This document shows positions 10,370-61,971 of a DNA stretch of 64,000 bases, one piece after another (position 1 is the stretch's first letter; every line of letters starts with the position of its first letter). The notes under the pieces were generated by a model that was not told the origin of the DNA, made no database searches, and saw only the letters and a program-made list of their open reading frames with translations. Made by a program: the position numbers and the translations under genes. The DNA comes from Isurus oxyrinchus (lineage: Eukaryota): NCBI GenBank assembly GCA_026770705.1, contig JANJGN010000242.1:434001-498000 (forward strand), given 5' to 3'.

Positions 10370-10751
10370 CACAGTGACACCGCACTCAGTGTCCCCTGTA
10401 CAACAACCTTCAACACCTCAATCTGCTGGGAAGTCATCATCAGACCGTTGAAAATGCCCAATTATTCAGCGGATTTAAATAAATAAACAATATTCACCAT
10501 TTCAAAGTCTCTGTTGTTTCAAACTGTTGTTGGTAAGGCCCTGAGCTCTGAGTAAATTGTCCCGGTAACAAGATATTCGCTTCCTAAAAACCGAGAAAAA
10601 TATGAAAGAAAGATAACAGAATAATGGAAATTACAGTGAATTGTTACCAGATTACAGCGATAATAACATCAACCCGACAATTCACTATCCATGCCCAGAT
10701 AACTTATATTGTGATCATTCAGAGGTATTTTCTCAGGTCTCTCCCACTGTG

Positions 10752-11252
10752 ACTGTCCCAAAATAATGCTGCAGTAATATCTGGACTGAGCTTTACAGTA
10801 ATAGGTGGCGCTGCCATCAATTCTCACATCCCGAATTTCCAGCGAAAATGTCTTTTCTGCTTTATTCGCCGACGCAACAAATATCCCCCCGCTGGAGATC
10901 CGCCCCCGCTCTGTCCCGGTCTGGGTTCATTTGAAGAAATCCCCGCCCGTCAAACGACGAGCGAAAAAAATCACCACCGAACACACAGGTGATGGTGAGA
11001 GACTAACACTCCTTCCTGGTCACCGCTGCCGGGTTCTGTGTCACTGACTGGCTGAAAGAGCCGAGGAATTAAACAGAGAGAGTTTGATGGACATTCAGAG
11101 CCGAACCACAGAGCGGGGTTAAAACCCCAGACAGTGTCTGCAATTGGGATGGACTCGGGCAGCTTTATATTCAATCCAAACAATGTCGGTTTCTTTGATC
11201 GGTACTCACGGGGTAAACAGACACACAGGTTGAAAACAAGGAGGATTCCCAT
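10752..11252 (-). pseudogene. Germline-joined NAR-TCR leader-VD pseudogene B1
   Basis: Leader 11210-11252 intact; acceptor AG>CG; TAG in FR1; +1 frameshift in CDR1 T-run; TGA in FR2. V runs directly into D (TTATTTTGGGACAGT, 10752-10766), then a 12-RSS (heptamer 10745-10751). Confidence 0.9.
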
Positions 11253-12909
11253 CGTTCGGCTGCCTGGAGCTGAGGCTTTATATGACGGGGAGCTGGAGAC
11301 TGCAGCCCTGGATTGCTCTGGGAGAACGGACCTCAGAGCTCGGACTTCTAGGGGGATCGAGTTCATTTGCACAGGGCAGTTTCGCTGAGAGTCATTGTTA
11401 TGCCGCAGGCTTCCCGGATCGCTGGTTAAGTTTTATGTGAATAAGAGACAGGTTTATGAAATTAGGCTGCAATTTTCAGACTCTACATTTGGATTGTGAT
11501 CCGGATGTGAAAGCCCCTCCCACAATACTCTGGTGGACGGGTGTGGGGGAGGGGGAGAGCTTTTCTTTCTGCCAGTGACGAACTGGGAGATCGGTGCATG
11601 TATTTGTGGTGTTTGTCAAAGGTGGAACGTGGTCCAAGGACACCAGGTGAATCGCCCTGTTCCGGTCTTTTCCCAATATTCCGGAGATTGTTGCCTGGTT
11701 CTTGTGACCCCGGACAGGTATCTGCTGTTTCGCAAAAGGAAATCACAAGGTTTGCTTTAAATACCCCTAGGACCGCCCGTCTGCCAACACAGGAGTGACC
11801 TTGAGCTATGAGACCCACACGGGCTTCATTGATTAACCGGACCCCGTACAATTAAACCACTTCCCCCAAAACCATTGACCAAAACTTATTTCACTTGCAG
11901 CATTTCCAGTTCGGATAAAATTTTACCGATCTGAAACGTTACCTCTGATTCTCTCTCCACTGAGAAGCATCCTAACCGGCTAAGCTTTACTTTCCCAGAA
12001 TGTTCTGTTCTTTTATTTCAGATTTGCAGTATCTCTGGTTTTCGGCATTTCGATTATTGCATCGTGTGGGAGTGGATTGGAACCCATGCTGTGTTTAACT
12101 TGTCTCTGAGCTGTGCTGATTATATTTGATCGATTCTAACGCCTCCTGTTCTTTGGCCTGTGCACGGGGGAGGGGGGGCGAGGGAGGGGATGGGGGGGGG
12201 GGGGGGGGGGGTCGGTGGCGGGAGGGTACTTCGCACTGAGAGACTTGGAAAAAATTGTTGTTTTAAACATTTGTTTTATTCTTTCGTGGGATGTGGGCGT
12301 CGCTGGTTGGTCAGCATTTATTGCCCTGCTCTTATTGCCCTTGTTCAAGGGCATTTAAGAGTCAAGCGCATTGAGGTGGGCCCGGAGTCTGATGTAGGCC
12401 AGACCAGGTAAGGGCAGTAGGTGTCCCTCCCTGAAGCACATTAGTGAAGCAGGAGGGTTTATTAACGGAAATCGGTAATGGTTTAGTGGTCATCATTAGA
12501 ATTGCAAATCTACATTATTAGGAGAATTGATGTTGCGCAGTGAATCCAGGATTGGAGAGTCAGCGTGTCTTTCAGGATCAGCCGCTGATTTTTGAAATAT
12601 TCTATCTTTGTCTTTCAGGAAGAAATGGCAAAGATTCAGGTTCTGAACATCTTTCAGAATGAAGGGGTTGTGAATTGCCTTCGATATCACTGCACTGTGG
12701 TTACTCACCATCTTCCCTCAGTTCTGTTTTACCACCTCCAATATCGCTTGGAAGCTCTGAGCTGTTCACTGAGTATCGGAGCTCGGTGCTGGGGTACATG
12801 TTTCCAAATGTCCCAGTCATGGCGTCTGCTGTTTTACACGAAAAAAACGATACGGTTCCCTTAATATTGATAGAGCCCTTCAATTCGATATCTCGTTTAT
12901 TGGTGTGCT

Positions 12910-13477
12910 GGACACTGCCGGATGCACACACGCACGCCGCACTCAGGTGCAGACACACACACGCATACACACACAACTTTAGCTATCTCCCCTCTGCTGG
13001 ACACTGTCATAACCTTTCTCTCTCTCTCTCTCTCAGACACACACACACACCTTAAGCAATCTAACCACTGCTGGACACTGTCATAATCACAAACACACAC
13101 ACATACACACAAACACACACACACACACACACACATACACACATTTAGATAATCCACCTTCTGCTGGACACTGCCGGAATCTCTCTCACACACACGCACT
13201 CAAACACACATACACACACACACCTTTAGCAAACTACCCTCGCATGGACACACACACACACACACAAACCTTTAGCAATCTGCCTTCTGCTGCACACTGT
13301 GATAATCACACACACACACACAAACGCACACACTTTACGAAATCTACCATCTGCTGCAGAGTGCCATAATCACACACACAAACCTTTTGCAATTCACCTT
13401 CTGATGGACATGCCGGAAGCACTCACAAACACACACACACATTTAGATAATTCAATTTCTGCTGGACACTGCCTGCA

Positions 13478-13508
<31 letters not shown>

Positions 13509-13770
13509 CACACACACACACACTTTAGCAAGCTACCATCGCTTACACACACAAACCTTAAGCAATCTGCCGTCTGCTGGACACTGTGATAATCACATAC
13601 ACACACGCACACACATACAAACTTTTAGCTCTGCTGGACACTGTGATAATCACACACACACACACGCACACACATTAAGCAATCTACCCTCTGCTGTAAA
13701 GTGTCATAATCTCACACACACACTTTCAGCAATTTAACTTCTGCTGGACACTGCCGGTATCACACTCATT
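12910..13770. repeat. Compound CA/CT microsatellite-minisatellite block
   Basis: Direct inspection. Confidence 0.9.
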
Positions 13771-15299
13771 AACCGTTCTGCTTTTCCTTCTGCGAAGTGT
13801 GATGCGGTGGCGTAGGGGCCTTGTCACTGCACCAGTAACCCAGGGTAATATCCCAAGTTCAAACCCCGCCATAGCGCTTGAATTTAATAATAATCTTGAA
13901 TTACCTTCAGCGGGAAACCGCTGTTAACTGTCATGAAAAAAACTAACTGGCTCGCAGATGGCTTGTCCTGCAGGGGTCTCTAAACACGCAGCTAGTTAGA
14001 AATGCTGACTCTCACTTGGCAGGGCTCTGTCATCAGCAGCGAGTCCACATATCAGCTTTTATGCTCCCATCCAAATAATTTTGGAGTATAAAAACAGATA
14101 ATTATGGCCATAATCGGCAAGTTGGTAAACATGGCAGAGCGAATCAGAAATAAGAATTCATTTCCGTGACATTTCATCTGAACCAAATTTGAGGTGTTGG
14201 AAAATTCTGGTGAAAGGTCACAGGCTGGAAACTTCGTTCTCTTTCTGGTTATGCTTCCAGGCATTACTTTTTGTGTTTCGAATTTGGATAACATTTTGCT
14301 GGGAGATACAAGAGAGGAGGGGGGCATATCACCCGCAAGGCAATCGCAGGCGCATTCTTTTAGGATCAATTTAGTCACATTTTGGGATGAGAATACATAT
14401 GCCCACATTGCGGACATTTCACTTTAAGCACGGATTTTACTGTATAATTATATTAATGTTCTTTAAGAATCATCACACAACGGTACAAAAGAAACACGCA
14501 GGATCTCTCTCGGTTCCCTGGTACAACATCAGACAATAAAGTTCCCAACGTAGCAATTCATTTCCCCTTAATTTTTAAACTTTACGTTCCCCTTTTTTCA
14601 CATTTTCTTTGTGCTGTTTTGTCTTTTTGCAATCGTGGGAACTTGCCCCAAACTCTCTAAGTTGTCTGTTCGGCTCAGCCTGTTCAGTTTCCGCAGTCGT
14701 ATTACTGTTACTCACTGGGAACTGCGTCTTCCGGCTCTCTGACAATTCGTGCTCTTTCCGCTCATTAACTGATCCCCTCCCGGTTTCACTGGGTGGAGAT
14801 TTCTGTCAGTTTTACATTATCGAGGAAGAGGAATGCGCAGGGGAAATGGGCCATTCAACCTGTGCATATCATCACTTCCGGCCAAACCCCACCAGGAATC
14901 TCATTGACAATTTGTATCCAGTTTCCTGTGTTGCTCTGTTCTGTTCTCCCTCCTGTTTGTTGAAGTGTTCCACTAAATATATCAATACTGTCTCCAACCT
15001 CTCCCCGTGGCAGCAACTTCCACATTCTGACCTGCCTTTGTTTCAATTAATTTGTCTTAAATGTTTTATTTGTTCTGTTATTTACTATCATATGTTGACG
15101 GCTATTGCTTTAGACTCAGTGTGTCCAGACTGACACCGTCCATTATTGACAAGATTTCTATGGATATTCCTCTTGGTTTTGTTTTCCAGAAAAAAGAGAC
15201 CAAGCCTGTTCAATATTCCTACAGAGATGTGGATTGTTGCTGATTTCTTTACTCAGGAGTGTAAGAAATCAGGGCAGAGAATCCAATCAATAGAAGCAG

Positions 15300-17143: not shown

Positions 17144-17642
17144 ACTGTCCCAAAATAATGTTGCCGTAGTATCTGTACTGAGCATTACAGTATTAGGTGG
17201 TGCTGCCTTCAACACTCACATCCCGAATTCCCAGCGAAAATGTCTTTTCTGCTTTATTCACCGACACAGCAAATTTCCCACCGCTGGAGATCCGCTCCCG
17301 CTCTTTCCCGGTCTGGGTTTGTCTGAAGAAATCCCCGCCCGTCAAAGGACGGGCGAAAAAACCACCAGAGAAAACACAGGTAATGGTGAGAGATTGACAT
17401 TCCTTCCTGATCACCGCTGCGGGAGTCTGCACCACTGACTGACCGACAGTGCCTGGAAGTTAAACAGAAGGAGTTTATGGAGCATCAGAGCCGAACCAGA
17501 GAACGAGGTTAAACCCCCAGACAGTGTCTGTAATTGGGATGGACTCGGCCAGCTTTATATTAAATCCCCACAATGTCGGTTTGTCTGATCGGTATTCAAG
17601 GGGTAACCAGACACACAGGGTGAAAACAAGGAGGATTCCATT
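17144..17642 (-). pseudogene. Germline-joined NAR-TCR leader-VD pseudogene C1
   Basis: Leader in-frame ATG lost (AAT) and donor GT>TT; V exon from 17452; TAA at 17193-17195 in the YYC motif. V fused to D, 12-RSS heptamer at 17137-17143. Confidence 0.9.
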
Positions 17643-21080: not shown

Positions 21081-21500
21081 AAATTAAACCTATTAAATCA
21101 ATTACCCTCGGGCCCTTCTTTCCTGATCCTCGTTACAGCAGAAGGTACAAACTACAAACCACAAACAGACCTTAAACTAGAAGCAATTACAGTCGTAAAT
21201 ACTTCCCGACTTTACCCACTACCTACCAGTCATTTCTTTCCCTTGTAGCCTCTAACGCTGTAGCCTCTAACGCTGTAGCAGGTCAAGGACACACTCAGAA
21301 GATTTAAGAAGTTGGATAGCAGAGATTCAATGTAGAGAGCACCTCCTCCCCTCTGCGCCGAATTCCCACTGTGCACCAAATTACCAATAGCCACACTCAC
21401 TCTGGCTGTGTGTCACTCAGGATGTGTTCACTCACTTTTTCGTGTGCAAGCACCATGCGCAGGTTTTTGTACAGCTCTCTCCGTGTTCTGTACCACTGTG

Positions 21501-21801
21501 CGCCGACTCAGTGCACAGTAATACACAGCGGAATCTGTCAGTTGTAGTTTGGAGATATTAAACCGGCTGATTTTCTCGGCAGCATCGATAGAAGCAGAAA
21601 TTCTTCCCCCGGCAGCATTTTCTTTATTTTCCTCTCCTGAAGTGTGTCTCTGAAGCAGATATTCCGGAGCCTGTCCTGGGGACTGACGATACCAGTGTAC
21701 TGTGTACGGACAGAACCCTGAATATTCACAGCTTAAAGTAACGCTGTCACCGGCAGCAGAGGTTTGTTCAGGCGGATTTCGGGAAATTATGGAACTGGAA
21801 T
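21501..21801 (-). CDS. TRDV: Supporting TCR-delta V exon S2
   Basis: DSSSIISRNPPEQTSAAGDSVTLSCEYSGFCPYTVHWYRQSPGQAPEYLL...LQLTDSAVYYCALSR; open and leaderless. Consensus CACAGTG-23-ACAAAAACC at 21500-21462. Confidence 0.94.
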
Positions 21802-23279
21802 CTAGAGGATATAGAAAAGGGACATTTTATTCATGTTCAGCCACTGCTTGATCAGGTGAATATGTCAATCGCGTACATAGCTCTGCTTTCTGCAGTAATT
21901 TTACTTGCTGGAAGCCTGTTTGAACCGTGTTCACTCTTATGAAAATATAATCAACTCGGGAATTAGATGATATCTTGTTTTACATGGCGAACTCTTCCGA
22001 TCAGTACTGCACTGTCTGAAATGGTGTTGGGGACAGATTCCATTGTAACTTTCAAACGAGTAATGGATCTATACTGGAAATGTAAATAAAAATATAAAGC
22101 TATGGAGAAACTTCACGGGCAGTGTGAACAATTGGATTGCACTTTTAAAGGGTCAGCGCCTACACGAGGGGCTGAATGTCATCATTCCGTGCTGGATAAT
22201 TCTGTGAGTTATGTTACATTCCAGTTTCTATTTTCCTTAATGAGACACAAACACGAGGGAGCATTTCATGTTCAACGAGGCAACCAATTTCCAACAAAAA
22301 CGATTTGTTGGACAGGAACACAACTGTGTTGCATGACTGTGCACTGCAATATCCAGCACAGACTGATGAGAATCGTCAGCACCGATTGGGCAAAACCGAG
22401 AGTGAGCATCAGTGGTCAACGGTTAATCATTTACTGCGGTTTAAAACTAATCAGGAATTTCTATCTGCCTTCTGCTCTATTTCTCAATGTTCTATCAATA
22501 GTGTCCTATTTCATGCAGATCAGCTTAATTTCAAATATATGCAATTAATTTCATTTTATTTCTTTAATTTCACATTTCCTTTATTTCACATTTTATTTGT
22601 GCTCTATGCGGTTTTTTCAATCGTGCGAACTCGCCCTAAAATCTCTCAGTTGTCAGTTGGGCTCAGTCTGTTCAATTTCCGCAGCGGTTTTACTGTTAAT
22701 CACTCGGAACTGCCTCTTCTGGCTCTCTGACAATTTCAACGCTTTCAGCAGGTTGACAATTTCTCTCTCGGGTTCACTGGGCGGAGGTTTCTCTCAATTT
22801 TACATTATCGAGGAAGAAGAATGTTGAAGACGAATGGGCCTTTCAGCCTGTGTGTATAATCAATTCCAGCCTGACCCGACCCGACACCTAACTGACCATT
22901 TCCATCCAGCTCCGTGTGTTGGTCTATTCCATTCTCCCTCCTGAATTTTCTAGTGTTCCACTAAATATATCAATACCAACTCCAACCTCTCCCTGTGGCA
23001 GCAAGTTCCACATTCTAAACTACATTTGTTTCAATTCATTTGTCTTAAATGTTTTATTTGTTCTGTTAGTTACTGTCATATGCTGACGGCTACTGATTTA
23101 GACTCAATTTGTCCAGAATAATACCGTTCATTATTGAAAAAATTCTATGGATATCCGTCAAAACTCTGTTTTCCGGAAAAAAGACACCCAGCCTGTTCAA
23201 TCTTCCCAGAAAGATGTCGATTGTGCTGATTTCTTTACTCAGGAGTTTAAGAAATCAGGGCAGATAATCCCATCAATAG

Positions 23280-24722: not shown

Positions 24723-24775
24723 CGGCTGTGACAGACACCACCGTCCCGGATCCATCCGCATAATCAGTTTCCCAC
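24723..24775 (-). CDS. NAR-TCR J segment A2
   Basis: WETDYADGSGTVVSVTA, donor GTAAGT; RSS CACGATG-23-ACAACAACC (24776-24814). Confidence 0.9.
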
Positions 24776-25156
24776 CACGATGACACCGCTCTCAGTCTCC
24801 CCGGTACAACAACCACCGACACGTCAACTTGCCGGCAAATCATCATCAGACAGTAGAAACTGCCCAATTATTCAGCCGTTTAAAATAAATAAAAATGTTC
24901 AATGTTTCAAAGACTCTATCGGTTCAAACTGTTCTTTGTGAGGCCCTGAGCTCTGAGTAAATGATCCCGGGAACGAGGTGCTCGCTTCATATAAACCGAG
25001 AAAAATATCAAAGAAAGAGAACTGAATGGTGGAAATTACAATGAAATGTAACCAGATTCCAGCGATAATAACATGAAACCGACTATTCACTATCCAGGCC
25101 CGGAGAATTTATATTGTGATCGTAGACAGGTATTTGCTCGGATCTCTCCCACTGTG

Positions 25157-25171
25157 ACTGTCCCAAAATAA
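25157..25171 (-). other. NAR-TCR D segment A2 (12-D-12)
   Basis: TTATTTTGGGACAGT, open in all three frames. 5' RSS CACAGCG-12-ATAAAATCC (25172-25199); 3' RSS CACAGTG-12-GCAAATACC (25156-25129). Confidence 0.9.
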
Positions 25172-25564
25172 CACAGCGTTACAAGTCGGTATAAAATCCC
25201 CCGGGTACTTGGTGAGACCTGGGCACTTTAGTTAAACAACGGGCACTGCGGTTCCCGGTTCCAGGTGTTAGACCAGGATCACATCTGGTGTTAGGAGTTT
25301 GTAACTGGGCTCAATCATTCCCAACCCCATTCACTGACACCAATCCCGGGAAAGACATCACCATCCGCAAACACTCGGCATTTATAAAACTCAAGACGTT
25401 AACGGCAATAATCCAATCTCATTATAAACTAGACTGTGGAGCAGACGGTGTGAGGCGGAACTGTGGGGGGTTTAACTGCAGATTAACTCCACTGTTTCAT
25501 TTGTTTCTGTGATAATCTGCAGTGAGAGTTTTTGTATCGTGGGAAACCGAGGCCCATCATTGTG

Positions 25565-25854
25565 AGATTTGTATCTGTACTGAGCTTTACAGTAATAGGT
25601 GGCGGTGTCTTCAACTCTCACATCCCGAATTTCCAGCGAAAATGTCTTTTCTGCTTTATTCACCGACACAACAAATCTCCCCCCGCTGGAGATCCGCTCC
25701 CGCTCTGTCCCGGTTTGGGTTTGTCTGAAGAAGTCCCCGCCCGTCAATGGACGAGCGAAGAAACCACCATAGAAAACACAGGTGATGGTGAGAGACTGAC
25801 ACTCCTTCCTGGTCACCGCTGCCGGGGTCTGTACCACTGACTGACTGAAATAGC
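25565..25854 (-). CDS. NAR-TCR V exon A2, intact
   Basis: Open V ending YYCKAQYRYKS; RSS CACAATG-22-ACAAAAACT (25564-25527). Confidence 0.93.
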
Positions 25855-26002
25855 CTGTAAATTAAACAGAAAGATTTTAATGGACCATGAGAGCCGAACT
25901 GCAGAGCGGGGTTAAACCCCCAAACAGTGTCTGTAATTGCGATGGAGTCGGGCAGCTGTATGTTAAATCCACACAGTGTCGGTTTGTTTGATCGGTACTC
26001 AC

Positions 26003-26045
26003 GGGGTAAACAGACCCACAGGATGTAAACAAGGAGGATTCCCAT
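26003..26045 (-). CDS. Leader exon of V A2
   Basis: MGILLVYILWVCLP, donor GTGAGT. Confidence 0.9.
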
Positions 26046-31180: not shown

Positions 31181-31237
31181 CGGCTGTGACAATCACCACC
31201 GTACCGGACCCATCCACAGAATCATATTTATAACCCA
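31181..31237 (-). pseudogene. NAR-TCR J segment B2, splice donor lost
   Basis: GYKYDSVDGSGTVVIVTA; intact 23-RSS (heptamer 31238-31244); donor CTAAGT. Confidence 0.88.
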
Positions 31238-31619
31238 CACAGTGACACCGCACTCTGTGTCCCCTGTACAACAACCTTCGACACCTCAATCTGCTGGGAG
31301 GTCATCATCAGACCGTAGAAAATGCCCAATTATTCAATGTATTTAAATAAATAAACAATATTCACCATTTCAAAGTCTCTGTTGTTTCAATCTGTTGTTG
31401 TTAAGACCCTGAGCTCTGAGTAAATGGTCCCGGTAACGAGATATTCGCTTCCTAATAACCGAGAAAAATATGAAAGAAAGATACCAGAATAATGGAAATT
31501 ACAGTGAATTGTTACCAGATTACAGAGATAATAACATCAACCCGACAATTCACTATCCATGCCCAGATAATTTATATTGCGATCGTTCAAAGGTATTCTC
31601 TCAGGTCTCTCCCACTGTG

Positions 31620-32120
31620 ACTGTCCCAAAATAATGCTACAGTAATATCTGGACTGAGTTTTACAGTAATAGGTGGCGCTGGCATCAATTCTCACATCCC
31701 GAATTTCCAGCGAAAATATCTTTTCTGCTTTATTCGCCGACACAACAAATATCCTCCCTCTGGAGATCCGCCCCCGCTCTGTCCCGGTCTGGGTTCGTTT
31801 GAAGAAATCCCCGCCCGTCAAACGACGAGCAAAAAAAATCACCACAGAACACACAGGTGATGGTGAGAGACTGACACTCCTTCCTGGTCACCGCTGCCGG
31901 GTTCTGTGTCACTGACTGACTGAAAGAGCCTGGAAATTAAACAGAGAGAGTTTCATGGACCATCAGAGCCGAACCACAGAGCGGGGTTAAAACCCCAGAC
32001 AGTGTCTGTAATTGGGATGGACTCGGGCAGCTTTATATTCAATCCACACAATGTCGGTTTGTTTGATCGGTACTCACGGGGTAAACAGACACATAGGTTG
32101 AAAACAAGGAGGATTCCCAT
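31620..32120 (-). pseudogene. Germline-joined NAR-TCR leader-VD pseudogene B2
   Basis: Leader 32078-32120 and acceptor (31930/31929) intact; +1 frameshift in CDR1 T-run. Junction YYCKTQSRYYCSIILGQ, then 12-RSS heptamer at 31613-31619. Confidence 0.9.
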
Positions 32121-37573: not shown

Positions 37574-37629
37574 CGGCTGTGACAATCACCAGCGTCCCGG
37601 ATCCATACACAGAATCATATTTATAATCA
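37574..37629 (-). pseudogene. NAR-TCR J segment T (C-type; dead heptamer and donor)
   Basis: DYKYDSVYGSGTLVIVTA; heptamer AACAGTG (37630-37636); donor CTAAGA. Confidence 0.87.
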
Positions 37630-38011
37630 AACAGTGGCACCGCTCTCGCTGTCCGCGGTACAACAACTCTTGACACCTCAATCTGCTGGGAAGTCATCAT
37701 CAGACAGTTGAAACTGCGCAATTATTCAGCGGATTTAAATAAATAAACAATATTCATCATTTTAAAGTCTCGGTTGTTTCAAACTGTTGTTTGTAAGGCC
37801 TTGAGCTCTGAGTAAATGGTCCCGGGAACGAGATATTCTCTTCATAAAAACCGAGAAAATTATGAAAGAAAGATAACAGAATGATTTGAACTACAATGCA
37901 AAGTAACTAAATTACAGCGATAATAACATCAACCCGACAATTCACTATCCGGGCTCGGAGAATTTATATTGTGATCGTTCAGAGGTATTTGCTCAGGTCT
38001 CTCCCACTGTG

Positions 38012-38319
38012 ACTGTCCCAAAATAATGTTGCCGTAGTATCTGTACTGAGCATTACAGTAATAGGTGGTGCTGCCTTCAACTCTCACATCCCGAATTCCC
38101 AGCGAAAATGTCTTTTCTGCTTTATTCACCGACACAGCAAATCTCCCTCCGCTGGAGATCCGCTCCCGCTCTGTCCCGGTGGGGTTTGTCTGAAGAAATT
38201 CCCGTCCGTCAAAGGACGAGCGTAGAAACCACCATAGAAATCATAGGTGATGGTGAGAGACTGACACACCTTCCAGGTCACCGCTGCCGTGTTCTGTGTC
38301 ACTGACTGTCTGAAAGAGC
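38012..38319 (-). pseudogene. Leaderless germline-joined VD pseudogene T
   Basis: Acceptor at 38320/38319; 1-nt deletion in FR2; junction YYCNAQYRYYGNIILGQ; 12-RSS heptamer 38005-38011. The leader intron is truncated at ~38381 and abuts a LINE fragment. Confidence 0.88.
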
Positions 38320-38389
38320 CTGGAAATTACACAGAGAGCCTTTAATGGACCATCAGAGCCGGACCACAGAACGGGGTTAAAATAAATTC

Positions 38390-38910
38390 AGGAGCCCCCA
38401 TATCACCTTTCAAACCTGCTCGGCCATTCAGTAATATCCGGGCTGATTTACAACCTCAATGTCACATTCCCGCACTCGCCCCATATCCCTGATCCCTTTA
38501 CTGTCCGAAAACCTGGCGAATATTCTCTTGAATGCACACCGATTATGAACACCCACAGCTCTCCGAGTTACGGAATGCCACAGATTCACAACAATGGTTG
38601 TACTGAACATATAGTTTCCTTCTCAGAAAACTCTTTATTCTGAAGCTGTAACCCCGAGTTATACAGTCCTCAGTCTGGGAAACACCGGCCCAGGATCTGC
38701 CCTGTCAAAGCCCTTCAGAATATTTTATGTTTTCATGAGATCGTCTCTCATTCTTCTAAACTCTAGGAAGTATAGACCGAGACAACCAAATCTCATCCAA
38801 TTGGACAATCCCTTCATCACTGGAATCAGTTTGATGAACCTTTGCTGCACTCCTTCCAATGCACATTGATCTCTCTTCTGTATGGAGACCAAAATTTTAC
38901 ACAGCATGTC
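38390..38910 (-). mobile_element. CR1-like LINE 3' fragment
   Basis: ORF 38725-38907. Confidence 0.75.
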
Positions 38911-39436
38911 GGACTGGAGGAGATTTCAGTCCTTTCCTCCATAAACATCCCCCAACACCGGGTCGAATTGTATATTGAAAGGTGCCCAGAAATCACCCAA
39001 TCATTCTCTCCCTTTCGAGTATTTTTTTCTTGCTGGTTCAAAATGAGCATTCTCCTTGTTTGTAATTGTTCCCTTATGGCCCTCCTCTCCTTTATAAGAT
39101 TAATGCATCATCCTCACTCGCTCACTGTACTGTGTTGTTTCAATTCACAGTAATCAGGGATACAGATAAATTACACCAATCCCATCTCCCAAACATTTAC
39201 ATTCAATATAGGGAAGTGACTGCAGTTCCAAACTTTCCCGTTTCGGTCTGAGAGTGGAAACGGAAGAAAGTGATTGATTATGTGAAGCCAATTGATAGAA
39301 ATGGCGGCGACGATGTCACTAATTTCAGTCACTGATTGTCAAATATTAAAATTTCATCTGGAAGCACATCAGGATCTCTTTAAACTGAAGTCACTTGTGT
39401 CACTCTCCCGTTTTTCGCCCGGGTCAGATATTGAAC

Positions 39437-39506
39437 GACCCGCTGCAGGTATCCGAACTGGCTGCAGTTGTGACCCGCTGCAGGTATCCGAACTGGCTGC
39501 AGTTGT
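39437..39506. repeat. 35-bp tandem duplication
   Basis: GACCCGCTGCAGGTATCCGAACTGGCTGCAGTTGT twice; single copy in the paralogues. Confidence 0.85.
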
Positions 39507-39861
39507 GTTGCGTTTATTCACCTGGTGCCTCATCCACATTGTGCGGCTCGGACTGCAATATGCTGCCCTGGAGAAAGCTCTGTGACCCCGCTCTCGGGCT
39601 CTAAGGGACAGATATTTATCCCTCGGTCACAGTTAACTCCGGGAGTGCAGTCCGGACTCTCGACAATCTCCGCTCATTGAAAACGATTCAGTGTGAGAGT
39701 CCGTGATGCTGATGTTGTCTCCGATGTGCCCGTTACAACAATAATGGCCCAGATTCCGCCAAACTCCACATCCCACCTAAACCACACTAATCTCAATAAT
39801 AAACTGCAGGTGAACATTACACTGGACAGGCTGTAACCCGTCGAGGTTTGGAGCTACTTCC

Positions 39862-39914
39862 CGGCTCTGAAAGTCACCACCGTCCCGGATCCATCCGCAT
39901 AATCAGTTTCCCAC
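39862..39914 (-). pseudogene. NAR-TCR J segment H, splice donor lost
   Basis: WETDYADGSGTVVTFRA; CACAGTG-23-ACAACAACC (39915-39953); donor GGAAGT. Confidence 0.88.
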
Positions 39915-40296
39915 CACAGTGACACCGCTCTCAGTGATCCCGGTACAACAACCAACGACACATCAAGGTGCCGGCAAATCATCATCAGACAGTAGAAACT
40001 GCCCAATTATTCAGCGGATTTAAATAAATAAAAAATGTTCAATGTTTCAAAGTCTCTGTCGGTTCAAACTGTTCTTTCTGAGGCCCTGAGCTCTGAGTAA
40101 ATGATCCCCGGAACGAGATGCTCGCTTCAAATAAACCGAGAAAAATATTAAAGAAAGGTAACTGAATGGTGGAAATTACAACGAAATTTAACCAGTTTCC
40201 AGCGATAATAACATGAACCCGACAGTTCACTCTCCGGGCCTGGAGAATTTGTATTGTGATCTCAGAGAGGTATTTGCTCGGGTCTCTCCCACTGTG

Positions 40297-40312
40297 AGTT
40301 TCCCAACCCCCA
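40297..40312 (-). other. NAR-TCR D segment H (12-D-12)
   Basis: TGGGGGTTGGGAAACT between two consensus CACAGTG heptamers (40290-40296, 40313-40319) with 12-nt spacers. Confidence 0.9.
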
Positions 40313-40705
40313 CACAGTGTTATAAGTCATTATAAAATCCCCCGGGTACTTGGTGATATCTGGGCACATTAGTTCAACACCGGGGACTGCGGTTCCCGGT
40401 TCCAGCTGTTAGACCAGGATCACATTTGGTGTTAGTGGTTTGTAACTGGGATCAGCCATTCCCAATCCCCATTCACTGACACCAATCCCAGGAAAGACAT
40501 CACCATCCGCACGCACTCGGCTGTTTTGAAACTCAAGATGTTAACTGCAATAATCCAATCTCATTATAAACTAGACTGTGGGGCAGACAGTGTGAGGCGG
40601 AACTGTAAGGGTTTAACTGCAGATTAAATCCGCTTTTTCATTTGTTTCTGTGATAATCTGCAGTGAGAGTTTTTGTATCGCGGGAAACTGAGGCCCATCA
40701 CTGTG

Positions 40706-41185
40706 TTTTCGGTACTCGTACTGAGCTTTACAGTAATAGGTGGCGGTGTCTTCAACTCTCACGTCCCGAATTTCCAGCGAAAAGGTCTTTTCTGCTTTAT
40801 TTACCGATTCAACAAATCTCCCTCCGCTGGACATCCGCTCCCGCTCTTTCCCGGTCTGGGTTTGTCTGAAGAAATCCACGCCCGTCAAAGGACGGGCGAA
40901 AAAACCACCAGAGAAAACACAGGTCATGGTGAGAGACTGACACTCCTTCCTGATCACAGCTGCGGGAGTCTGCACCACTGACTGACCGACAGTGCCTGGA
41001 AGTTAAACAGAAAGAGTTTATGGAGCATCAGAGCCGAACCAGAGAACGGGGTTAAACCCCCAGACAGTGTCTGTAATTGGGATGGACTCGGCCAGCTTTA
41101 TATTAAATCCCCACAATGTCGGTTTGTTTGATCGGTATTCAAGGGGTAACCAGACACACAGGGTGAAATCAAGGAGGATTCCATT
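40706..41185 (-). pseudogene. NAR-TCR V H: open V exon (40706-40995) with RSS but defective leader
   Basis: V open to YYCKAQYEYRK; CACAGTG-22-ACAAAAACT (40705-40668). Leader 41143-41185 lacks an in-frame ATG and has a TT donor. Confidence 0.87.
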
Positions 41186-44630: not shown

Positions 44631-45036
44631 TAAATTAAACCTATTAAATCAATTACCCTCGGGCCCTTCTTTCCTGATCCTCGTTACAGCAGAAGGTACA
44701 AATTACAAACCACAAACAGACCTTAAACTAGAAGCAATTACAGTCGTAAATACTTCCCGACTTTACCCACTACCTACCAGTCATTTCTTTCCCTTGTAGC
44801 CTCTAACGCTGTAGCAGGTCAAGGACACACTCAGAAGATTTAAGAAGTTGGATAGCAGAGATCCAATGTAGAGAGCACCTCCTCCCCTCTGCGCCGAATT
44901 CCCACTGTGCACCAAATTACCAATAGCCACACTCACTCTGGCTGTGTGTCACTCAGGATGTGTTCACTCACTGTTTCGTGTGCAAGCACCATGCGCAGGT
45001 TTTTGTACAGCTCTCTCCGTGTTCTGTACCACTGTG

Positions 45037-45337
45037 CGCCGACTCAGTGCACAGTAATACACAGCGGAATCTGTCAGTTGTAGTTTGGAGATATTAAACC
45101 GGCTGATTTTCTCGGCAGCATCGATAGAAGCAGAAATTCTTCCCCCGGCAGCATTTTCTTTATTTTCCTCTCCTGAAGTGTGTCTCTGAAGCAGATATTC
45201 CGGAGCCTGTCCTGGGGACTGACGATACCAGTGTACTGTGTACGGACAGAACCCTGAATATTCACAGCTTAAAGTAACGCTGTCACCGGCAGCAGAGGTT
45301 TGTTCAGGCGGATTTCGGGAAATTATGGAACTGGAAT
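45037..45337 (-). CDS. TRDV: Supporting TCR-delta V exon S3
   Basis: Essentially identical to S2; consensus 23-RSS at 45036-44998. Confidence 0.94.
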
Positions 45338-46809
45338 CTAGAGGATATAGAAAAGGGACATTTTATTCATGTTCAGCCACTGCTTGACCAGGTGAATATG
45401 TCAATCGCGTACATAGCTCTGCTTTCTGCAGTAATTTTACTTGCTGGAAGCCTGTTTGAACCGTGTTCACTCTTATGAAAATATAATCAAGTCGGGAATT
45501 AGATGATATCTTGTTTTACATGGCGAACTCTTCCGATCAGTACTGCACTGTCTGAAATGGTGTTGGGGACAGATTCCATTGTAACTTTCAAACGAGTAAT
45601 GGATCTATACTGGAAATGTAAATAAAAATATAAAGCTATGGAGAAAATTCATGGGCAGTGTGAACAATTGGATTGCACTTTTAAAGGGTCAGCGCCTACC
45701 GGAGATGCCGAAGGTCATCTTTCCATGCTGGTTAATTCTGTGAGTTATGTTACATTCCAGTTTCTATTTTCCTTAATGAGACACAAACACGAGGGAGCAT
45801 TTCATGTTCAACGAGGCAACCAATTCCCAACAAAAACGATTTGTTGGACAGGAACACAACTGTGTTGCATGACTGTGCACTGCAATATCCAGCACAGACT
45901 GATGGGAATCGTCAGCACCGATTGGGCAAAACCGAGAGTGAGCATCAATGGACAACGGTTAATCATTTACTGCGGTTTAAAACTAATCAGGAATTTCTAT
46001 CTGCCTTCTGCTCTATTTCTCAATGTTCTATCAATAGTGTCCTATTTCATGCAGATCAGCTTAATTTCAAATATATGCAATTAATTTCATTTTATTTCTT
46101 TAATTTCACATTCCCTTTATTTCACATTTTATTTGTGCTCTATGCGGTTTTTTCAATCGTGCGAACTCGCCCTAAAATCTCTAAGTTGTCAGCTGGGCTC
46201 AGTCTGTTCAGTTTCCGCAGTGGTTTTACTGTTAATCACTCGGAACTGCCTCTTCTGGCTCTCTGACAATTTCAACGCTTTCAGCAGGTTGACTAATTCT
46301 CTCTCGGGTTCACTGGGCGGAGGTTTCTCTCAATTTTACATTATCGAGGAAGAAGCATGTTGAAGACGAATGGGCCTTTCAGCCTGTGTGTATAATCAAT
46401 TCCAGCCTGATCCGACCCGAAACCTAACTGACCATTTCCATCCAGCTCCGTGTGTTGGTCTATTCTATTCTCCCTCCTGAATTTTCCAGTGTTCCACTAA
46501 ATATATCACTACTACCTCCAACCTCTCAGCAAGTTCCACATTCTGACCTGCCTTTGTTTAAATTCATTTGTCTTAAATGTTCAATTTGTTCTGACAGTTA
46601 CTGTCATATGTTGACAGCTACTGCTTTAAACTCAATTTGTCCAGACTAAAACCTTTCATTACTGAAAAAATTTCTATGGATCTTCCTCTTAGTTCTGTTT
46701 TCCGGAAAAAACAGACCCAGCCTGTCCAATCTGCCCAGAGAGATGTGGATTGTTGCTGATTTCTTTACTCAGGAGTGTAAGAAATCAAGGCAGAGAATCC
46801 AATCAATAG

Positions 46810-48245: not shown

Positions 48246-48298
48246 CGGCTGTGACAGACACCACCGTCCCGGATCCATCCGCATAATAAGTTTCCCAC
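48246..48298 (-). CDS. NAR-TCR J segment A3 (coding and donor intact; RSS heptamer mutated)
   Basis: WETYYADGSGTVVSVTA, donor GTAAGT; heptamer CAGGATG (48299-48305) has lost the invariant CAC. Confidence 0.85.
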
Positions 48299-48679
48299 CA
48301 GGATGACACCGCTCTCAGTCTCCCCGGTACAACAACCACCGACACGTCAACTTGCCGGCAAATCATCATCAGACAGTAGAAACTGCCCAATTATTCAGCC
48401 GTTTAAAATAAATAAAAATGTTCAATGTTTCAAAGACTCTATCGGTTCAAACTGTTCTTTGTGAGGCCCTGAGCTCTGAGTAAATGATCCCGGGAACGAG
48501 GTGCTCGCTTCATATAAACCGAGAAAAATATCAAAGAAAGAGAACTGAATGGTGGAAATTACAATGAAATGTAACCAGATTCCAGCGATAATAACATGAA
48601 ACCGACAATTCACTATCCGAGCCCGGAGAATTTATATTGTGATCGTAGACAGGTATTCGCTCGGATCTCTCCCACTGTG

Positions 48680-48694
48680 ACTGTCCCAAAATAA
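48680..48694 (-). other. NAR-TCR D segment A3 (12-D-12)
   Basis: TTATTTTGGGACAGT; heptamers at 48673-48679 and 48695-48701, 12-nt spacers. Confidence 0.9.
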
Positions 48695-49087
48695 CACAGC
48701 GTTACAAGTCGGTATAAAATCCCCCGGGTACTTGGTGAGACCTGGGCACTTTAGTTAAACAACGGGCACTGCGGTTCCCGGTTCCAGGTGTTAGACCAGG
48801 ATCACATCTGGTGTTAGGAGTTTGTAACTGGGTTCTGCCATTCCCAATCCCCCTTCACTGACACCAATCCCAGGAAAGGCATCACCATCCGCAAACACTC
48901 GGCATTTATAAAACTCAAGACGTTAACGGCAATAATCCAATCTCATTATAAACTAGACTGTGGGGCAGACGGTGTGAGGCGGAACTGTGGGGGTTTAACT
49001 GCAGATTAACTCCACTGTTTCATTTGTTTCTGTGATAATCTGCAGTGAGAGTTTTTGTATCGCGGGAAGCCGAGAACCATCATTGTG

Positions 49088-49377
49088 AGATTTGTATCTG
49101 TACTGAGCTTTACAGTAATAGGTGGCGGTGTCTTCAACTCTCACATCCCGAATTTCCAGCGAAAATGTCTTTTCTGCTTTATTCACCGACACAACAAATC
49201 TCTCCCCGCTGGAGATCCGCTCCCGCTCTGTCCCGGTTTGGGTTTGTCTGAAGAAATCCCCGCCCGTCAAAGAAAGAGCGAAGAAACCACCATAGAAAAC
49301 ACAGGTGATGGTGAGAGACTGACACTCCTTCCTGGTCACCGCTGCCGGGGTCTGTACCACTGACTGACTGAAATAGC
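49088..49377 (-). CDS. NAR-TCR V exon A3, intact
   Basis: Open V (CDR1 FYGGFFALSLTG) ending YYCKAQYRYKS; CACAATG-22-ACAAAAACT (49087-49050). Confidence 0.93.
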
Positions 49378-49525
49378 CTGTAAATTAAACAGAAAGCTTT
49401 TAATAGACCATGAGAGCCGAACAACAGAGCGGGGTTAAACCCCCAAACAGTGTCTGTAATTGCGATGGAGTCGGGCAGCTGTATGTTAAATCCACACAGT
49501 GTTGGTTTGTTTGATCGGTACTCAC

Positions 49526-49568
49526 GGGGTAAACAGACCCACAGGATGAAAACAAGGAGGATTCCCAT
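49526..49568 (-). CDS. Leader exon of V A3
   Basis: MGILLVFILWVCLP, donor GTGAGT. Confidence 0.9.
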
Positions 49569-54617: not shown

Positions 54618-54674
54618 CGGCTGTGACAATCACCACCGTACTGGACCCATCCACAGAACCATATTTATAACCCA
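54618..54674 (-). pseudogene. NAR-TCR J segment B3, splice donor lost
   Basis: GSG>GSS; intact 23-RSS (heptamer 54675-54681); donor CTAAGT. Confidence 0.87.
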
Positions 54675-55053
54675 CACAGTGACACCGCACTCAGTGTCCC
54701 CTGTACAACAACCTTCGACACCTCAATCTGCTGGGAAGTCATCATCAGAACGTAGAAAATGCCCCAATTATTCAGCGGATTTAAATAAACAATATTCACC
54801 ATTTCAAAGTCTCTGTTGTTTCAAACTGTTGTTGTTAAGGCCCTGAGCTCTGAGTAAATGGTCCCGGTAACGAGATATTCGCTTCCCAAAAACCGAGAAA
54901 AATATGAAAGAAAGATACCAGAATAATGGAAATTACAGTGAATTGTTACCAGATTGCAGCGATAATAACATCAACCCGACAATTCACTATCCGGGCCCAG
55001 ATAATTTATATTGTGATCGTTCAGAGGTAATTTCTCAGGTCTCTCCCACTGTG

Positions 55054-55554
55054 ACTGTCCCAAAATAATGCTGCAGTAATATCTGGACTGAGCTTGACAG
55101 TAATAGGTGGCGCTGCCATCAATTCTCACATCCCGAATTTCCAGCGAAAATGTCTTTTCTGCTTTATTCGCGGGCGCAACAAATATCCCCCCGCCGGAGT
55201 TCCGCCCCCGCTCTGTCCCGGTCAGGGTTCGTTTGAAGAAATCCCCGCCCGTCAAACGACGAGCGAAAAAAATCACCAACGAACACACAGGTGATGGTGA
55301 GAGACTAACACTCGTTCCTGGTCACCGCTGCCGGGTTCTGTGTCACTGACTGGCTGAAAGAGCCTGGAAATTAAACAGAGAGAGTTTGATGGACCATCAG
55401 AGCCGAACCACAGAGCGGGGTTAAAACCCCAGACAGTGTCTGTAATAGGGATGGACTCGGGCAGCTTTATATTCAATCCACACAATGTCGGTTGGTTTGA
55501 TCGGTGCTCACGGGGTAAACAGACACACAGGTTGAAAACAAGGAGGATTCCCAT
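55054..55554 (-). pseudogene. Germline-joined NAR-TCR leader-VD pseudogene B3
   Basis: Leader 55512-55554; V from 55363; TAG in FR1 and +1 frameshift; junction YYCQAQSRYYCSIILGQ; 12-RSS heptamer 55047-55053. Confidence 0.9.
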
Positions 55555-57802: not shown

Positions 57803-57850
<48 letters not shown>

Positions 57851-58095: not shown

Positions 58096-59619
58096 TTAAC
58101 CGTTCTGCTTTTCCTTCTGCGAAGTGTGATGCGGTGGCGCAGGGGCCTTGTCACTGCACCAGTAACCCAGGGTAATATCCCAAGTTCAAACCCCGCCATA
58201 GCACTTGAATTTAAAAATAATCTTGAATTACCTTCAGCGGGAAACCGCTGTTAACTGTCATGAAAAAAACTAACTGGCTCGCAGATGGCTTGTCCTGCAG
58301 GGGTCTCTAAACATGCAGCTAGTTAGAAATGCTGACTCTCAGTTGGCAGGGCTCTGTCATCAGCAGCGAGGCTACATATCAGCTTTTATGCTCCCATTCA
58401 AATAATTTTGGAGTATAAAAACAGATAATTATGGCCATAATCGGCAAGTTGGTAAACATGGCAGAGCGAATCAGAAATAAGAATTCATTTCCTTGACATT
58501 TCATCTGAACCAAATTTGAGGTGTTGGAAAATTCTGGTGAAAGGTCACAGGCTGGAAACTTCGTTCTCTTTCTGGTTATGCTTCCAGGCTTTTCATTTGG
58601 TGTTTCGAATTCGGATAACATTTTGCTGGGAGATACAAGAGAGGAGGGGGGCATATCACCCGCAGGGCAATCGTAGGCGCATTGTTTTAGGATCAATTTA
58701 GTCACATTTTGGGACGAGAATAAATATGCCCACATTGCGGACATTTCACTTTAAGCACGGATTTTACTGTATAATTATATTAATGTTCTTTAAGAATCAT
58801 CACACAACGGTACAAAAGAAACACGCAGGATCTCTCTCGGTTCCCTGGTACAACATCAGACAATGAAGCTCCCAACGTAGCAATTCATTTCCCCTTAATT
58901 TTTAAACTTTACGTTCCCTTTTTTTCACATTTTCATTGTGCTGTTTTGTCTTTTTGCAATCGTGCGAACTTGCCCCAAACTCTCTAAGTTGTCTGTTGGG
59001 CTCAGCCTGTTCAGTTTCCGCAGTGGTTTTTACTGTTACTCACTGGGAACTGCCGCTTCCGGCTCTCTGACAATTCATGCTCTTTCCGCTCATTAACTGA
59101 TCCTCTCCCGGGTTCACTGGGTGGAGATTTCTCTCAGTTTTACATTATCGAGGAAGAGGAATGCGGAGGGGAAATGGGCCATTCAACCTGTGTATATCAT
59201 CACTTCCGGTCAAACCCCACCAGGAATCTTATTGACCATTTACATCCAGTTCCCTGTGTTGTTCTGTTCCGTTCTCCCTCCTGCATTTTCAAGTGTTCCA
59301 CTAAATATATCAGTACTGTCTCCAACCTTTCCCCGTGGCAGCAACTTCCACATTCTGACCTGCCTTTGTTTCAATTAATTTGTCTTAAGTGTTTTATTTG
59401 TTCTGTTATTTACTATCATATGTTCAAGGCTATTGCTTTAGTCTCAGTGTGTCCAGACTGACACCGTCCTTTATTGACAAGATTTCTATGGATATTCCTC
59501 TTGGTTTTGTTTTCCAGAAAAAGGAGACCCAGCCTGTTCAATATTCCTAGATAGATATGGATTGTTGCTGATTTCTTTACTCAGGAGTGTAAGAAATCAG
59601 GGCAGAGAATCCAATCAAT

Positions 59620-60145
59620 AGAAGCAGAGGCCCACATATCACCTTTCAAACCTGCTCAGCCATTCAGTAATATCCGGGCTGATTTACAACCACCAGGTCA
59701 CATTCCCGCACTCTCCCCAGATCCCTGATCCCTTTACTGTCCGAAAACCTGGTTAATATACTCTTGAATGCACACAGATTATGAACACCCATATCTCTCT
59801 GAGTTACGGAATGCCACAGATTCACAACAACGGTTCTGCTGAAGATATTTTTTCCGTCTCAGATGACTCTTCATTCTGAAGCTGTGACTCCGAGTTCTAT
59901 ACTCCTCAGTCTGGGGAGACACCGACCCAGAATCTGCCCTGTCAAAGCCCTTCAGTATATTAGATGTGTTCATGAGATCACCATTCATTCTTCTAAACTC
60001 TAGGAAATATAGACCGAGACGTCACAATCTCTTCTCATTGGTCAATCCCTTCAACTCAGGAAGCAGTCTGATGAATCTTTGCTGCACTTCTTTCAATGCA
60101 GATTGATCTCCCTTCTGTCAGGGGAAGAAAGCTTTACACAGCATT
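59620..60145 (-). mobile_element. CR1-like LINE 3' fragment
   Basis: ORF 59779-59988. Confidence 0.75.
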
Positions 60146-61034
60146 TCGAACTGGAGTCTGTTTCAGCCCTTCCCTCCATAAAGCTCATTCACCACGGAGT
60201 CGGATTGTACTTTGAACGGCGCCCAGAAATCATCCAACCCTTCTCCCCCTTTCGATTATTTTTTAGCTTTCTGGTTCTGAATGAGCATTCTCCTAGTTTG
60301 TAATTGTTCCCTTATGTTCCTCATGCTCTCACTGCACTGTGTTGCTTATTCACAGTATTCAGGAATACAGATGCATTTCAGCAATCCCATCTCTCAAACA
60401 TTTATTTTTCATGTTAGATGAGTATCTGCATTTCCAAACTTTTACATTTCGGTCTGAGGGCCGAAAAGGGGAAGAGTGTTTGGTTCTTTGGAGACAATTG
60501 AAAGAAATGGCAGGTGCATTGCTACTAATTTTAGTCACTGATTTTCCAATAATATAATTCCACCTGGACCCACATTAGGGTGTCTTATATCTGAATTCCC
60601 TTTTGTCACTCTCCCGTTTTTCTCCTGGGTGAGTTATTGAACGAGCCTCTGCAGGTTTCCGATAGGCCGCAGTTTGTTCAGTTTATTGACCCGGTGCCTC
60701 ATTCATGTTGCGCGGCTCATACTGCAATCTGCTGCCCAGGAGGGAGCTCTATGACCCCGCTCCCGTGTTCTAAGGGACAGATAGAGCTCCATCGGTCACG
60801 GTTAACACCGGGAGTGGGGTCTGGATTGTCGATAATCTGCACTCATTAGAAGCGACTCAGATTGTGAGAGTTCGTGATGTTGATGTTATCCCCGATGTGC
60901 CCGTTGATGCAATAATTGTCCAGATCCAGTCAACTACCACATCCCACCCAAACCCTCCACTGATATCAATAATAAACTGACGGTGAACATTACCCGGGAT
61001 AGTCTGTAACCCGGCGGGCTTTGAAGTTGCTTAG

Positions 61035-61090
61035 CGGCTGTGACAATCACCGCCGTCCCGGATCCATACACAGAATCATATTTATAATCA
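61035..61090 (-). pseudogene. NAR-TCR J segment C3 (dead heptamer and donor)
   Basis: DYKYDSVYGSGTAVIVTA; heptamer AACAGTG (61091-61097); donor CTAAGC. Confidence 0.87.
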
Positions 61091-61472
61091 AACAGTGGCA
61101 CCGCTCTCAGTGTCCGCGGTACAACAACCATCGACACCTCAATCTGCTGGGAAGTCATCATCAGACAGTTGAAACTGCGCAATTATTCAGCGGATTTAAA
61201 TAAATAAACAATATTCATCATTTTAAAGTCTCGGTTGTTTCAAACTGTTGTTTGTAAGGCACTGAGCTGTGAGTAAATGGTCCCGGGAACGAGATATTCT
61301 CTTCATAAAAACCGAGAAAATTATGAAAGAAAGATAACAGAATGATTTAAACTACAATGCAATGTAACTAAATTACTGCGATAATAACATCAACCCGACA
61401 ATTCACTATCCGGGCTCGGAGAATTTATATTGTGATCGTTCAGAGGTATTTGCTCAGGTCTCTCCCACTGTG

Positions 61473-61971
61473 ACTGTCCCAAAATAATGTTGCCGTAGTA
61501 TCTGTACTGAGCATTACAGTAATAGGTGGTGCTGCCTTCAACTCTCACATCCCGAATTCCCAGCGAAAATGTCTTTTCTGCTTTATTCACCGACACAGCA
61601 AATCTCCCTCCGCTGGAGATCCGCTCCCGCTCTTTCCCGGTCTGGGTTTGTCTGAAGAAATCCCCGCCCGTCAAAGGACGGGCGAAAAAACCACCAGAGA
61701 AAACACAGGTAATGGTGAGAGACTGACACTCCTTCCTGATCACCGCTGCGGGAGTCTGCACCACTGACTGACCGACAGTGCCTGGAAGTTAAACAGAAAG
61801 AGTTTATGGAGCATCAGAGCCGAACCAGAGAACGGGGTTAAACCCCCAGACAGTGTCTGTAATTGGGATGGACTCGGCCAGCTTTATATTAAATCCCCAC
61901 AATGTCGGTTTGTCTGATCGGTATTCAAGGGGTAACCAGACACACAGGGTGAAAACAAAGAGGATTCCATT
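61473..61971 (-). pseudogene. Germline-joined NAR-TCR VD gene C3: open VD exon (61473-61781), defective leader
   Basis: VD open through YYCNAQYRYYGNIILGQ; 12-RSS CACAGTG-12-GCAAATACC (heptamer 61466-61472). Leader 61929-61971 has no in-frame ATG and a TT donor. Confidence 0.88.

Follow-up and report, generated by a model that had tools for sequence, protein, structure and literature searches.

Relics of a probable RAG-type germline V-D join among the NAR-TCR cassettes of Isurus oxyrinchus

The DNA analysed here is a stretch of 64,000 nt from Isurus oxyrinchus contig JANJGN010000242.1 (positions 434,001–498,000), which is called the window in this work and to whose own numbering all positions below refer. 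The window contains ten NAR-TCR cassettes made of variable (V), diversity (D) as well as joining (J) segments, all of them on the minus strand. In six of these cassettes (B1–B3 and C1–C3) the V and D segments are joined, and in the other four (A1–A3 and X) the segments are split. Comparison of the window with itself revealed a super-repeat of 21–23.5 kb in three copies that are mutually 95–96% identical, the B and C cassettes being about 88% identical to each other in the same comparison. Read on the minus strand, the order of the unit is C (joined), B (joined), A (split) and a leaderless supporting V of T-cell receptor (TCR) delta type. No constant region was found in the window. The best explanation of this layout is that the window represents a part of the shark TCR-delta region carrying tandem NAR-TCR units. 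The D core, TTATTTTGGGACAGT, is 15 nt long and was found eight times, only on the minus strand, about 0.26 chance matches being expected and none of 100 shuffled sequences giving eight. Six of the occurrences (10752, 17144, 31620, 38012, 55054 and 61473) belong to joined cassettes and two (25157 and 48680) to split ones. The six joined sites are exactly those given in the original prediction made on this DNA, but the count of cassettes rises from eight to ten with two further unjoined ones, A1 (J at 3892) and X (J at 39875), which bear D sequences other than TTATTTTGGGACAGT.

At all six sites where V had been predicted to read directly into D, the D core was found on the minus strand, and the sequence upstream of it consists of the V tail (..TATTACTGT AAxxCT CAGTxCAGATAy) followed by an insert of 10 nt. 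The insert is TACTGCAGCA in B1 (10767–10776) and B3, TACTGTAGCA in B2 and TACGGCAACA in C1–C3, the homologous inserts of the other five cassettes lying at 17159–17168, 31635–31644, 38027–38036, 55069–55078 and 61488–61497. Inserts of B and C have the same length and differ at 2 of their 10 positions, as would be expected of sequences whose flanks diverge by 11–14%. The first TAC of the insert may be encoded by V, because the V tails of relatives read ..YRYY and then a T-heptamer, which would leave about 7 bases unexplained. Neither a templated source nor a second D was found for the insert, the motif TACKGCARCA appearing in the window only at the junctions.

The elements that normally separate V from D can be read at the split sites 25157 and 48680. 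There, V ends in a recombination signal sequence (RSS) of the 23 type, formed by CACAATG, a 22-nt spacer and ACAAAAACT, and beyond it come about 390 bp, the 5' 12-RSS of D (GGATTTTAT, 12 nt and CGCTGTG), D itself and the 3' 12-RSS. As had been claimed, the V 23-RSS, the spacer of about 390 bp and the 5' 12-RSS of D are gone from all six joined copies, and every one of them retains the signal 3' of D (CACAGTG, 12 nt and a nonamer). A separate J with an RSS of 23-bp spacer is also present, at about 375 bp downstream instead of the 380 bp initially given. In B1 the D core (10752–10766) and its 3' 12-RSS (heptamer 10751–10745, nonamer 10732–10724) occupy 10724–10766, and the same module is found in the other five joined cassettes. 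The spacers measure 12 bp at the 3' side of D and 23 bp at J and, by direct reading of the sequence, 22 nt at V and 12 nt at the 5' side of D, so that the two removed signals constitute a legal 12/23 pair. The V tail of A2 (CAGTACAGATAC), a cassette with which the original prediction advised a comparison, matches that of the joined copies. On the D side the deletion ends exactly to the base, all 15 nt of D being identical to those of A2 and A3, and on the V side it ends no more than 6 nt from the heptamer. The leader intron was said to be retained, and this was observed in five of the six copies; C2 (D core at 38012) has no leader at all.

Besides the join, the six cassettes carry many lesions. 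B1 (10313–11252; leader ATG at 11252, V-D exon 11061–10752, J coding sequence 10369–10313) has lost the AG of the V acceptor (CTCGGC), and presents a TAG stop (TGT TAG) as well as a frameshift (+1 T) that follows Cys23, its J donor being CTAAGT in place of GTAAGT. Leader and splice sites are intact in B2 (31181–32120; V-D exon 31929–31620, J coding sequence 31237–31181), but its frame runs into stops owing to the +1 T after Cys23, and CTAAGT stands at the J donor. B3 (54618–55554; V-D exon 55363–55054, J coding sequence 54674–54618) shows a TAG stop, the +1 T frameshift after Cys23 and the same donor CTAAGT. Concerning the C type, C1 (16706–17641; V-D exon 17452–17144, J coding sequence 16761–16706) has its leader ATG shifted by 1 nt and a leader donor changed from GTGAGT to TTGAAT, its YYC motif contains a TAA stop, and at J the heptamer reads CACTGTT and the donor CTAAGA. 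C2 (37574–38319; V-D exon 38319–38012, J coding sequence 37629–37574) lacks both leader and promoter, its upstream sequence being unrelated to that of the other cassettes, and it has a mosaic V exon with a frameshift by deletion of 1 nt, a change of Cys23 to Tyr and the J donor CTAAGA. Finally, C3 (61035–61970; V-D exon 61781–61473, J coding sequence 61090–61035) is the only copy whose V-D exon is still open, with a frame of 102 codons ending in ..YYCNAQYRYYGNIILGQ; its leader ATG is shifted by 1 nt, its leader donor is likewise changed from GTGAGT to TTGAAT, and its J heptamer and J donor are CACTGTT and CTAAGC, respectively.

The GT of the J splice donor is therefore changed to CT in 6 of 6 joined copies. 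The J heptamer is altered at its coding-proximal base (CACTGTT) in all three C copies, and the J 23-RSS is canonical in B1–B3. Furthermore, no supporting V nor remnants of it were found behind the B or C cassettes with blastn and tblastn in the window. The V exons of B and C diverge by 0.13–0.14 and their non-coding flanks by 0.11–0.15, in comparison with 0.028 for the V exons of A1 and A2 and 0.07–0.09 for the flanks of these. Since the divergence between B and C equals the non-coding rate, their V exons are drifting neutrally. Judged from their sequence, all six joined copies are pseudogenes without a present receptor-coding function. The original prediction had treated them as genes, implicitly working ones, and this cannot be maintained, given the loss of the J donor in the six, the further lesions in each and the lack of a supporting V-delta. 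One open frame among six, that of C3, would be the expected leftover of neutral decay. In addition, because the lesion of the J donor is common to B and C, the joined cassette was probably already dead when it was duplicated into both types.

Among the split cassettes, A2 (24723–26045) is unjoined, apparently functional and the closest to a parent-like form. It has an open V frame, a V exon (25854–25565) provided with a 23-RSS, a D (25157–25171) between 12-RSSs, a J (24775–24723) and the donor GTAAGT. A3 (48246–49568) has the same D as the joined copies, an open V frame and the donor GTAAGT, and A1 (3879–5200) has a different D, TGGTTAGGTTGGGGAGT. In A1–A3 the J donor is GTAAGT or GTATGT, the V, D and J are separate with 23/12-12/23 signals and each cassette has its own leader. 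The fourth unjoined cassette, X (39862–41184), is a mosaic pseudogene in which a dead C-type leader and the 5' half of a C-type V are followed by a V 3' half, RSSs, D and J that are A-like, with the J donor GGAAGT. Some signals of the apparently functional A cassettes are non-canonical: the J heptamer is CATCGTG in A1 (3932–3938) and A2 (24776–24782) and CATCCTG in A3 (48299–48305), where the critical coding-proximal triplet is altered and recombination may be poor, and the 3' heptamer of the A1 D (4307–4313) is CACAATA.

Downstream of A2 lies a leaderless supporting TCR-delta V (21431–21826) with a splice acceptor in the right phase, the Cys of complementarity-determining region 1 (CDR1) and a 23-RSS. 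There are three such segments in the window (615–983, 21431–21826 and 44967–45362), each behind an A cassette. The best matches of the A2 V exon among solved structures are VNAR domains (E values from 7e-19 to 1e-13). A2 scores above the cut-off of the Pfam V-set family, and the joined C3 exon, with 24.2 bits, is just below this cut-off of 26 bits. All cassettes read ..RKECQSL.., which contains the a-b loop Cys, and have ..FFRQ.. in place of WYRQ; an a-b loop Cys and the lack of a canonical Trp in the WYRK motif are hallmarks of NAR-TCR (PMC1845163). On the basis of the VNAR matches and these published hallmarks, the A cassettes with their supporting V are considered canonical NAR-TCR units. 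Cassette A would be a working, fully split V-D-J that is spliced to the leaderless supporting V-delta.

The history of the join was traced in the 610 columns of a partition that starts at the D 3' RSS, takes in J and continues downstream (six joined and four split cassettes). In it the six joined copies stand on one side of a 100/100 branch. This branch, together with the homologous inserts of equal length, indicates one ancestral join that was later duplicated, as the original prediction had proposed. Contigs of four runs cover the region, three of these runs coming from a second organism (organism B) and from three studies, and one organism-B contig of 331 nt (run X10) aligns without gaps over 37949–38178, crossing the C2 joint. 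None of the RNA runs contained the stretch. Six copies that differ by 2–14% share homologous junctions, and a contig from a run of another organism crosses the joint, which is indirect but strong evidence that the joints are germline ones. The split form is the older of the two, because bamboo shark V segments (P0004 and P0006) carry the same 23-RSS.

The explanation that we prefer, and hold with good confidence, is that of a RAG-type V-D join made in the germ line, of single origin and later duplicated, whose products are now dead relics. The V 23-RSS and the 5' 12-RSS of D of one cassette would have recombined in the germ line, so that about 440 bp comprising both signals and the spacer were lost and a coding joint was left with a V tail short of a few bases, 7–10 bases of uncertain origin and a full-length D. 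The J splice donor would have been lost by the time of the B/C duplication, with neutral drift afterwards, and the whole C-B-A unit would have been triplicated later. The action of RAG in germ cells had already been proposed for these cassettes. The part of that proposal that rests on the deletion agrees with our data, as the deletion is bounded by the heptamer borders in the way of a coding joint; RAG as the agent, and germ-line cells as the place of its action, we infer. A RAG-type germline join is favoured because the deletion is bounded by signals, because an origin from cDNA could be discarded and because a somatic or assembly origin is very improbable (see below).

Several observations weigh against this explanation. 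First of all, no P nucleotides were seen, as by direct reading neither flank of the insert shows a palindrome of more than 1 nt. The 7–10 bases that the flanks do not account for would also be unusual for germline joins, and germline-joined immunoglobulin (Ig) genes show little sign of TdT (Lee et al. 2000, PMC2193156). In addition, the longest invariant run across the six joined copies (in B1 within 10724–10768, and at the five homologous sites) comprises D, heptamer and spacer and reaches 37 nt, which pure neutral decay does not predict. Given that two other invariant blocks of 32–33 nt exist, one in the D-J spacer (GGATAGTGAATTGTCGGGTTGATGTTATTATC) and one below J (TAATGTTCACCGTCAGTTTATTATTGATATCAG), rate heterogeneity or gene conversion may be the cause of the 37-nt run, and the two shorter blocks could themselves be regulatory elements or conversion tracts. 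Finally, the tree of the V exon is discordant: X groups with C1 and C3 (99/99), its D-J part grouping with the A cassettes, and a V-exon tree with the joined six held in a single clade was rejected (p-AU 0.009). Recombination or gene conversion has thus shuffled the V exons, which leaves the V side with a less clear-cut history than the D-J side.

The conserved D-RSS block and the unexplained bases of the insert bring in another possibility, namely that the joined cassettes are not inert. Their D and 3' 12-RSS would be kept for recombination in thymocytes, for instance by competing for a downstream working J, or as donor in the germline exchange behind X and C2; separately, if the bases of the joint were true N additions, a TdT-like activity would have been present beside RAG in germ-line cells. 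We regard this as unlikely. If it were true, the N additions would mean a TdT-like activity at a germline join, which is not seen in the germline-joined Ig genes of sharks.

It is improbable that the joint was made without RAG, by slippage during replication or by end joining that produced an ordinary deletion and left a short filler. A filler of 10 nt is typical of repair by non-homologous end joining, the joint has no P-nucleotide signature, and both deletions and mosaics are common in the array, as the lost leader of C2 and cassette X illustrate. However, the two ends of the deletion fall at signal borders, exactly at D and within 6 nt at V, for which the chance with random endpoints is of the order of 1e-4 (an estimate over a few hundred bases), and the two removed signals are those that a recombinase would pair legally under the 12/23 rule.

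It is also very improbable that the joined cassettes are working, partly pre-assembled genes which need only the D-to-J join and give a semi-invariant NAR domain. The intact D 3' 12-RSS in 6 of 6 copies, the canonical J 23-RSS of B1–B3, the open V-D frame of 102 codons in C3 and the fact that D and its RSS are the most conserved block would fit such genes. Moreover, the white shark gene model P0015 has a J of B/C type (KYDSVDGSGT) spliced to its own supporting V. Nevertheless, in the window the J donor is lost in the six copies and no supporting V follows them. All three B copies are frameshifted, two of them having the TAG stop as well, the C copies either lack the leader or have its ATG shifted and its donor lost, CACTGTT is the J heptamer of the C type, and the divergence of the V exons equals the non-coding rate.

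The many repeats of the region might lead to think of lymphocyte rearrangements or assembly artefacts in the reference, but this is scarcely credible for six loci, 2–14% divergent, whose shared homologous joint has itself gathered substitutions, and for contigs of four runs, three of them from organism B, one of which passes through the joint without a gap. Equally hard to believe is that a lymphocyte sequence was reverse-transcribed and re-inserted, for which the marsupial V-mu-j is a precedent as a pre-joined TCR V (PMC7615758), or that the joined form is ancestral and the split one derived. The joined and split cassettes are colinear as regards leader intron, promoter region, D 3' RSS, D-J spacer and unjoined J, a joined form with an intron and a flanking RSS is already incompatible with re-insertion, and the bamboo shark V segments P0004 and P0006 are split with the same 23-RSS. 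The retention of the D 3' RSS, of the unjoined J and of the leader intron, from which the original prediction had argued and which all the copies except C2 possess, thus makes retroposition unlikely.

Shark antibody genes have the peculiarity, well known from textbooks, of being joined by RAG in the germ line. The Ig clusters of cartilaginous fish include light chains with VJ joined in the germ line and heavy-chain clusters of VD-J or VDJ-joined type, from which RAG activity in germ cells has been inferred (Lee et al. 2000, PMC2193156). As in them, exactly the signals and the spacer between two segments have been lost here, most probably from inherited DNA, with no loss of the leader intron; the joined form derives from the split one, and its copies have been duplicated since. 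Unlike them, the cassettes lie in a NAR-TCR/TCR-delta locus and not in an Ig locus, their joint has 7–10 bases explained by neither flank, whereas Ig joints show little N addition, and all copies are dead, whereas several joined Ig genes are expressed. That V was joined to D before D to J, which had been put forward as a property of this event, does no more than restate the VD-J configuration, and sharks offer nothing unusual in this respect, as their Ig segments join in no strict order (PMC2435157).

A second system for comparison is the marsupial TCR-mu, whose V-mu-j is a complete VDJ exon, functional, invariant and thought to be retrotransposed (PMC7615758). It resembles the cassettes described here in having a pre-assembled V in a TCR of three-domain design, as NAR-TCR is. 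In contrast, the copies of the window are pseudogenes in which the join is limited to V and D and which keep introns and the other RSSs; an intronless, fully joined VDJ exon of the V-mu-j type was not what we found, as five of six copies have the leader intron and J is separate with its RSS. The opossum is said to have a partially germline-joined VH which, by the title of a work by Wang and Miller in 2012 (cited in PMC5931798 and PMC7615758), recombines and is transcribed. This VH is alike in being a partial V-D germline join with the 3' signal left for J, and differs in belonging to a mammalian IgH locus, the copies of the window showing no sign of use. The canonical doubly rearranging NAR-TCR cassette is reportedly that of Criscitiello et al. 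in 2006. Its traits are an IgNAR-like V with the a-b loop Cys and no WYRK Trp, its own leader, one D, one J and a leaderless supporting V-delta with CDR1 Cys, and A1–A3 fit them fully, whereas the B and C cassettes are devoid of V-RSS, 5' D-RSS, supporting V and J donor, and the leader is dead or missing in C1–C3.

The joined NAR-TCR cassettes therefore appear to belong to the known class of germline-joined antigen-receptor segments of sharks and to be the first of them in a TCR locus. In agreement with the novelty supposed by the original prediction, no description of germline joining in NAR-TCR was found in the literature searched, an earlier mention being possible in Criscitiello 2006, Deiss 2019 or Ott 2021. 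A signal-bounded V-D joint in the TCR-delta/NAR-TCR region would mean that this recombinase was active in the germ line on a T-cell receptor locus as well, of which activity these cassettes would be a dated and duplicated fossil with the split parent form alongside. The practical weight in the window is limited, as the six copies are dead, go back to a single event and make no contribution to the receptor repertoire.

Two more joints were seen in organism-B contigs, at 38012>40718 (X12) and 40297>40718 (X5), where 18 other letters stand between a V tail and the D 3' RSS. Read on the minus strand, these give AGGTACAACATTGGTTAA and AGATACGGATGGGGCAGT, respectively, and the X12 joint matches the V tail QYRYNI of the white shark model P0015, which suggests that organism B may be the white shark. 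Both have the look of additional cassettes with V and D joined but with different letters at the junction or in D, a reading that is not a firm one for short contigs placed on paralogues.

Among the automatic NCBI gene models, many of about 234 aa (P0005–P0075, from 13 elasmobranch species), in which leader, NAR V, J and supporting V are connected, look pre-joined, although most of them read through RSS letters (..THSD.., ..AVSLWW..). To judge by these letters, most are cryptic-splice artefacts. Their names vary, examples being 'T cell receptor alpha chain MC.7.G5-like', 'immunoglobulin gamma-1 heavy chain-like' and 'DSCAM-like'. The Cetorhinus model P0005 (leader-NAR V-J-supporting V) was rejected as a germline VDJ join for this reason, as its CDR3 contains the translated J-RSS (..VSLWW..). 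Carcharodon P0009, P0018 and P0022 and Cetorhinus P0020 are free of RSS letters and may be true germline VDJ exons as far as the models go; P0009 stacks two NAR V domains. The tail of P0001, an open reading frame from ENA, reads like a V followed by a few codons and a 12-RSS, and it is taken, like the white shark model P0015, as a lead only.

Unit 2 is the only one with the extra unjoined cassette X (region 37574–41184), whose J lies upstream of C2, at about 1.5 kb from its V-D exon, which has no leader but keeps the splice acceptor. This geometry is that of a J followed by a supporting V, yet both cassettes are dead, X by its donor GGAAGT and its dead leader and C2 by its frameshift. X and C2 are reciprocal-looking mosaics of V halves of C type and A/B type, and their sequence suggests that unequal crossing-over or gene conversion within the V exon made them. 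Between X and C2, at 38606–38873, there is a very high-copy interspersed repeat, over which each of the four runs, whichever of the two organisms it comes from, shows a summed contig depth exceeding that of the flanks by a factor of 20–100. Numerous loose contig ends fall inside it, at 38726–38778.

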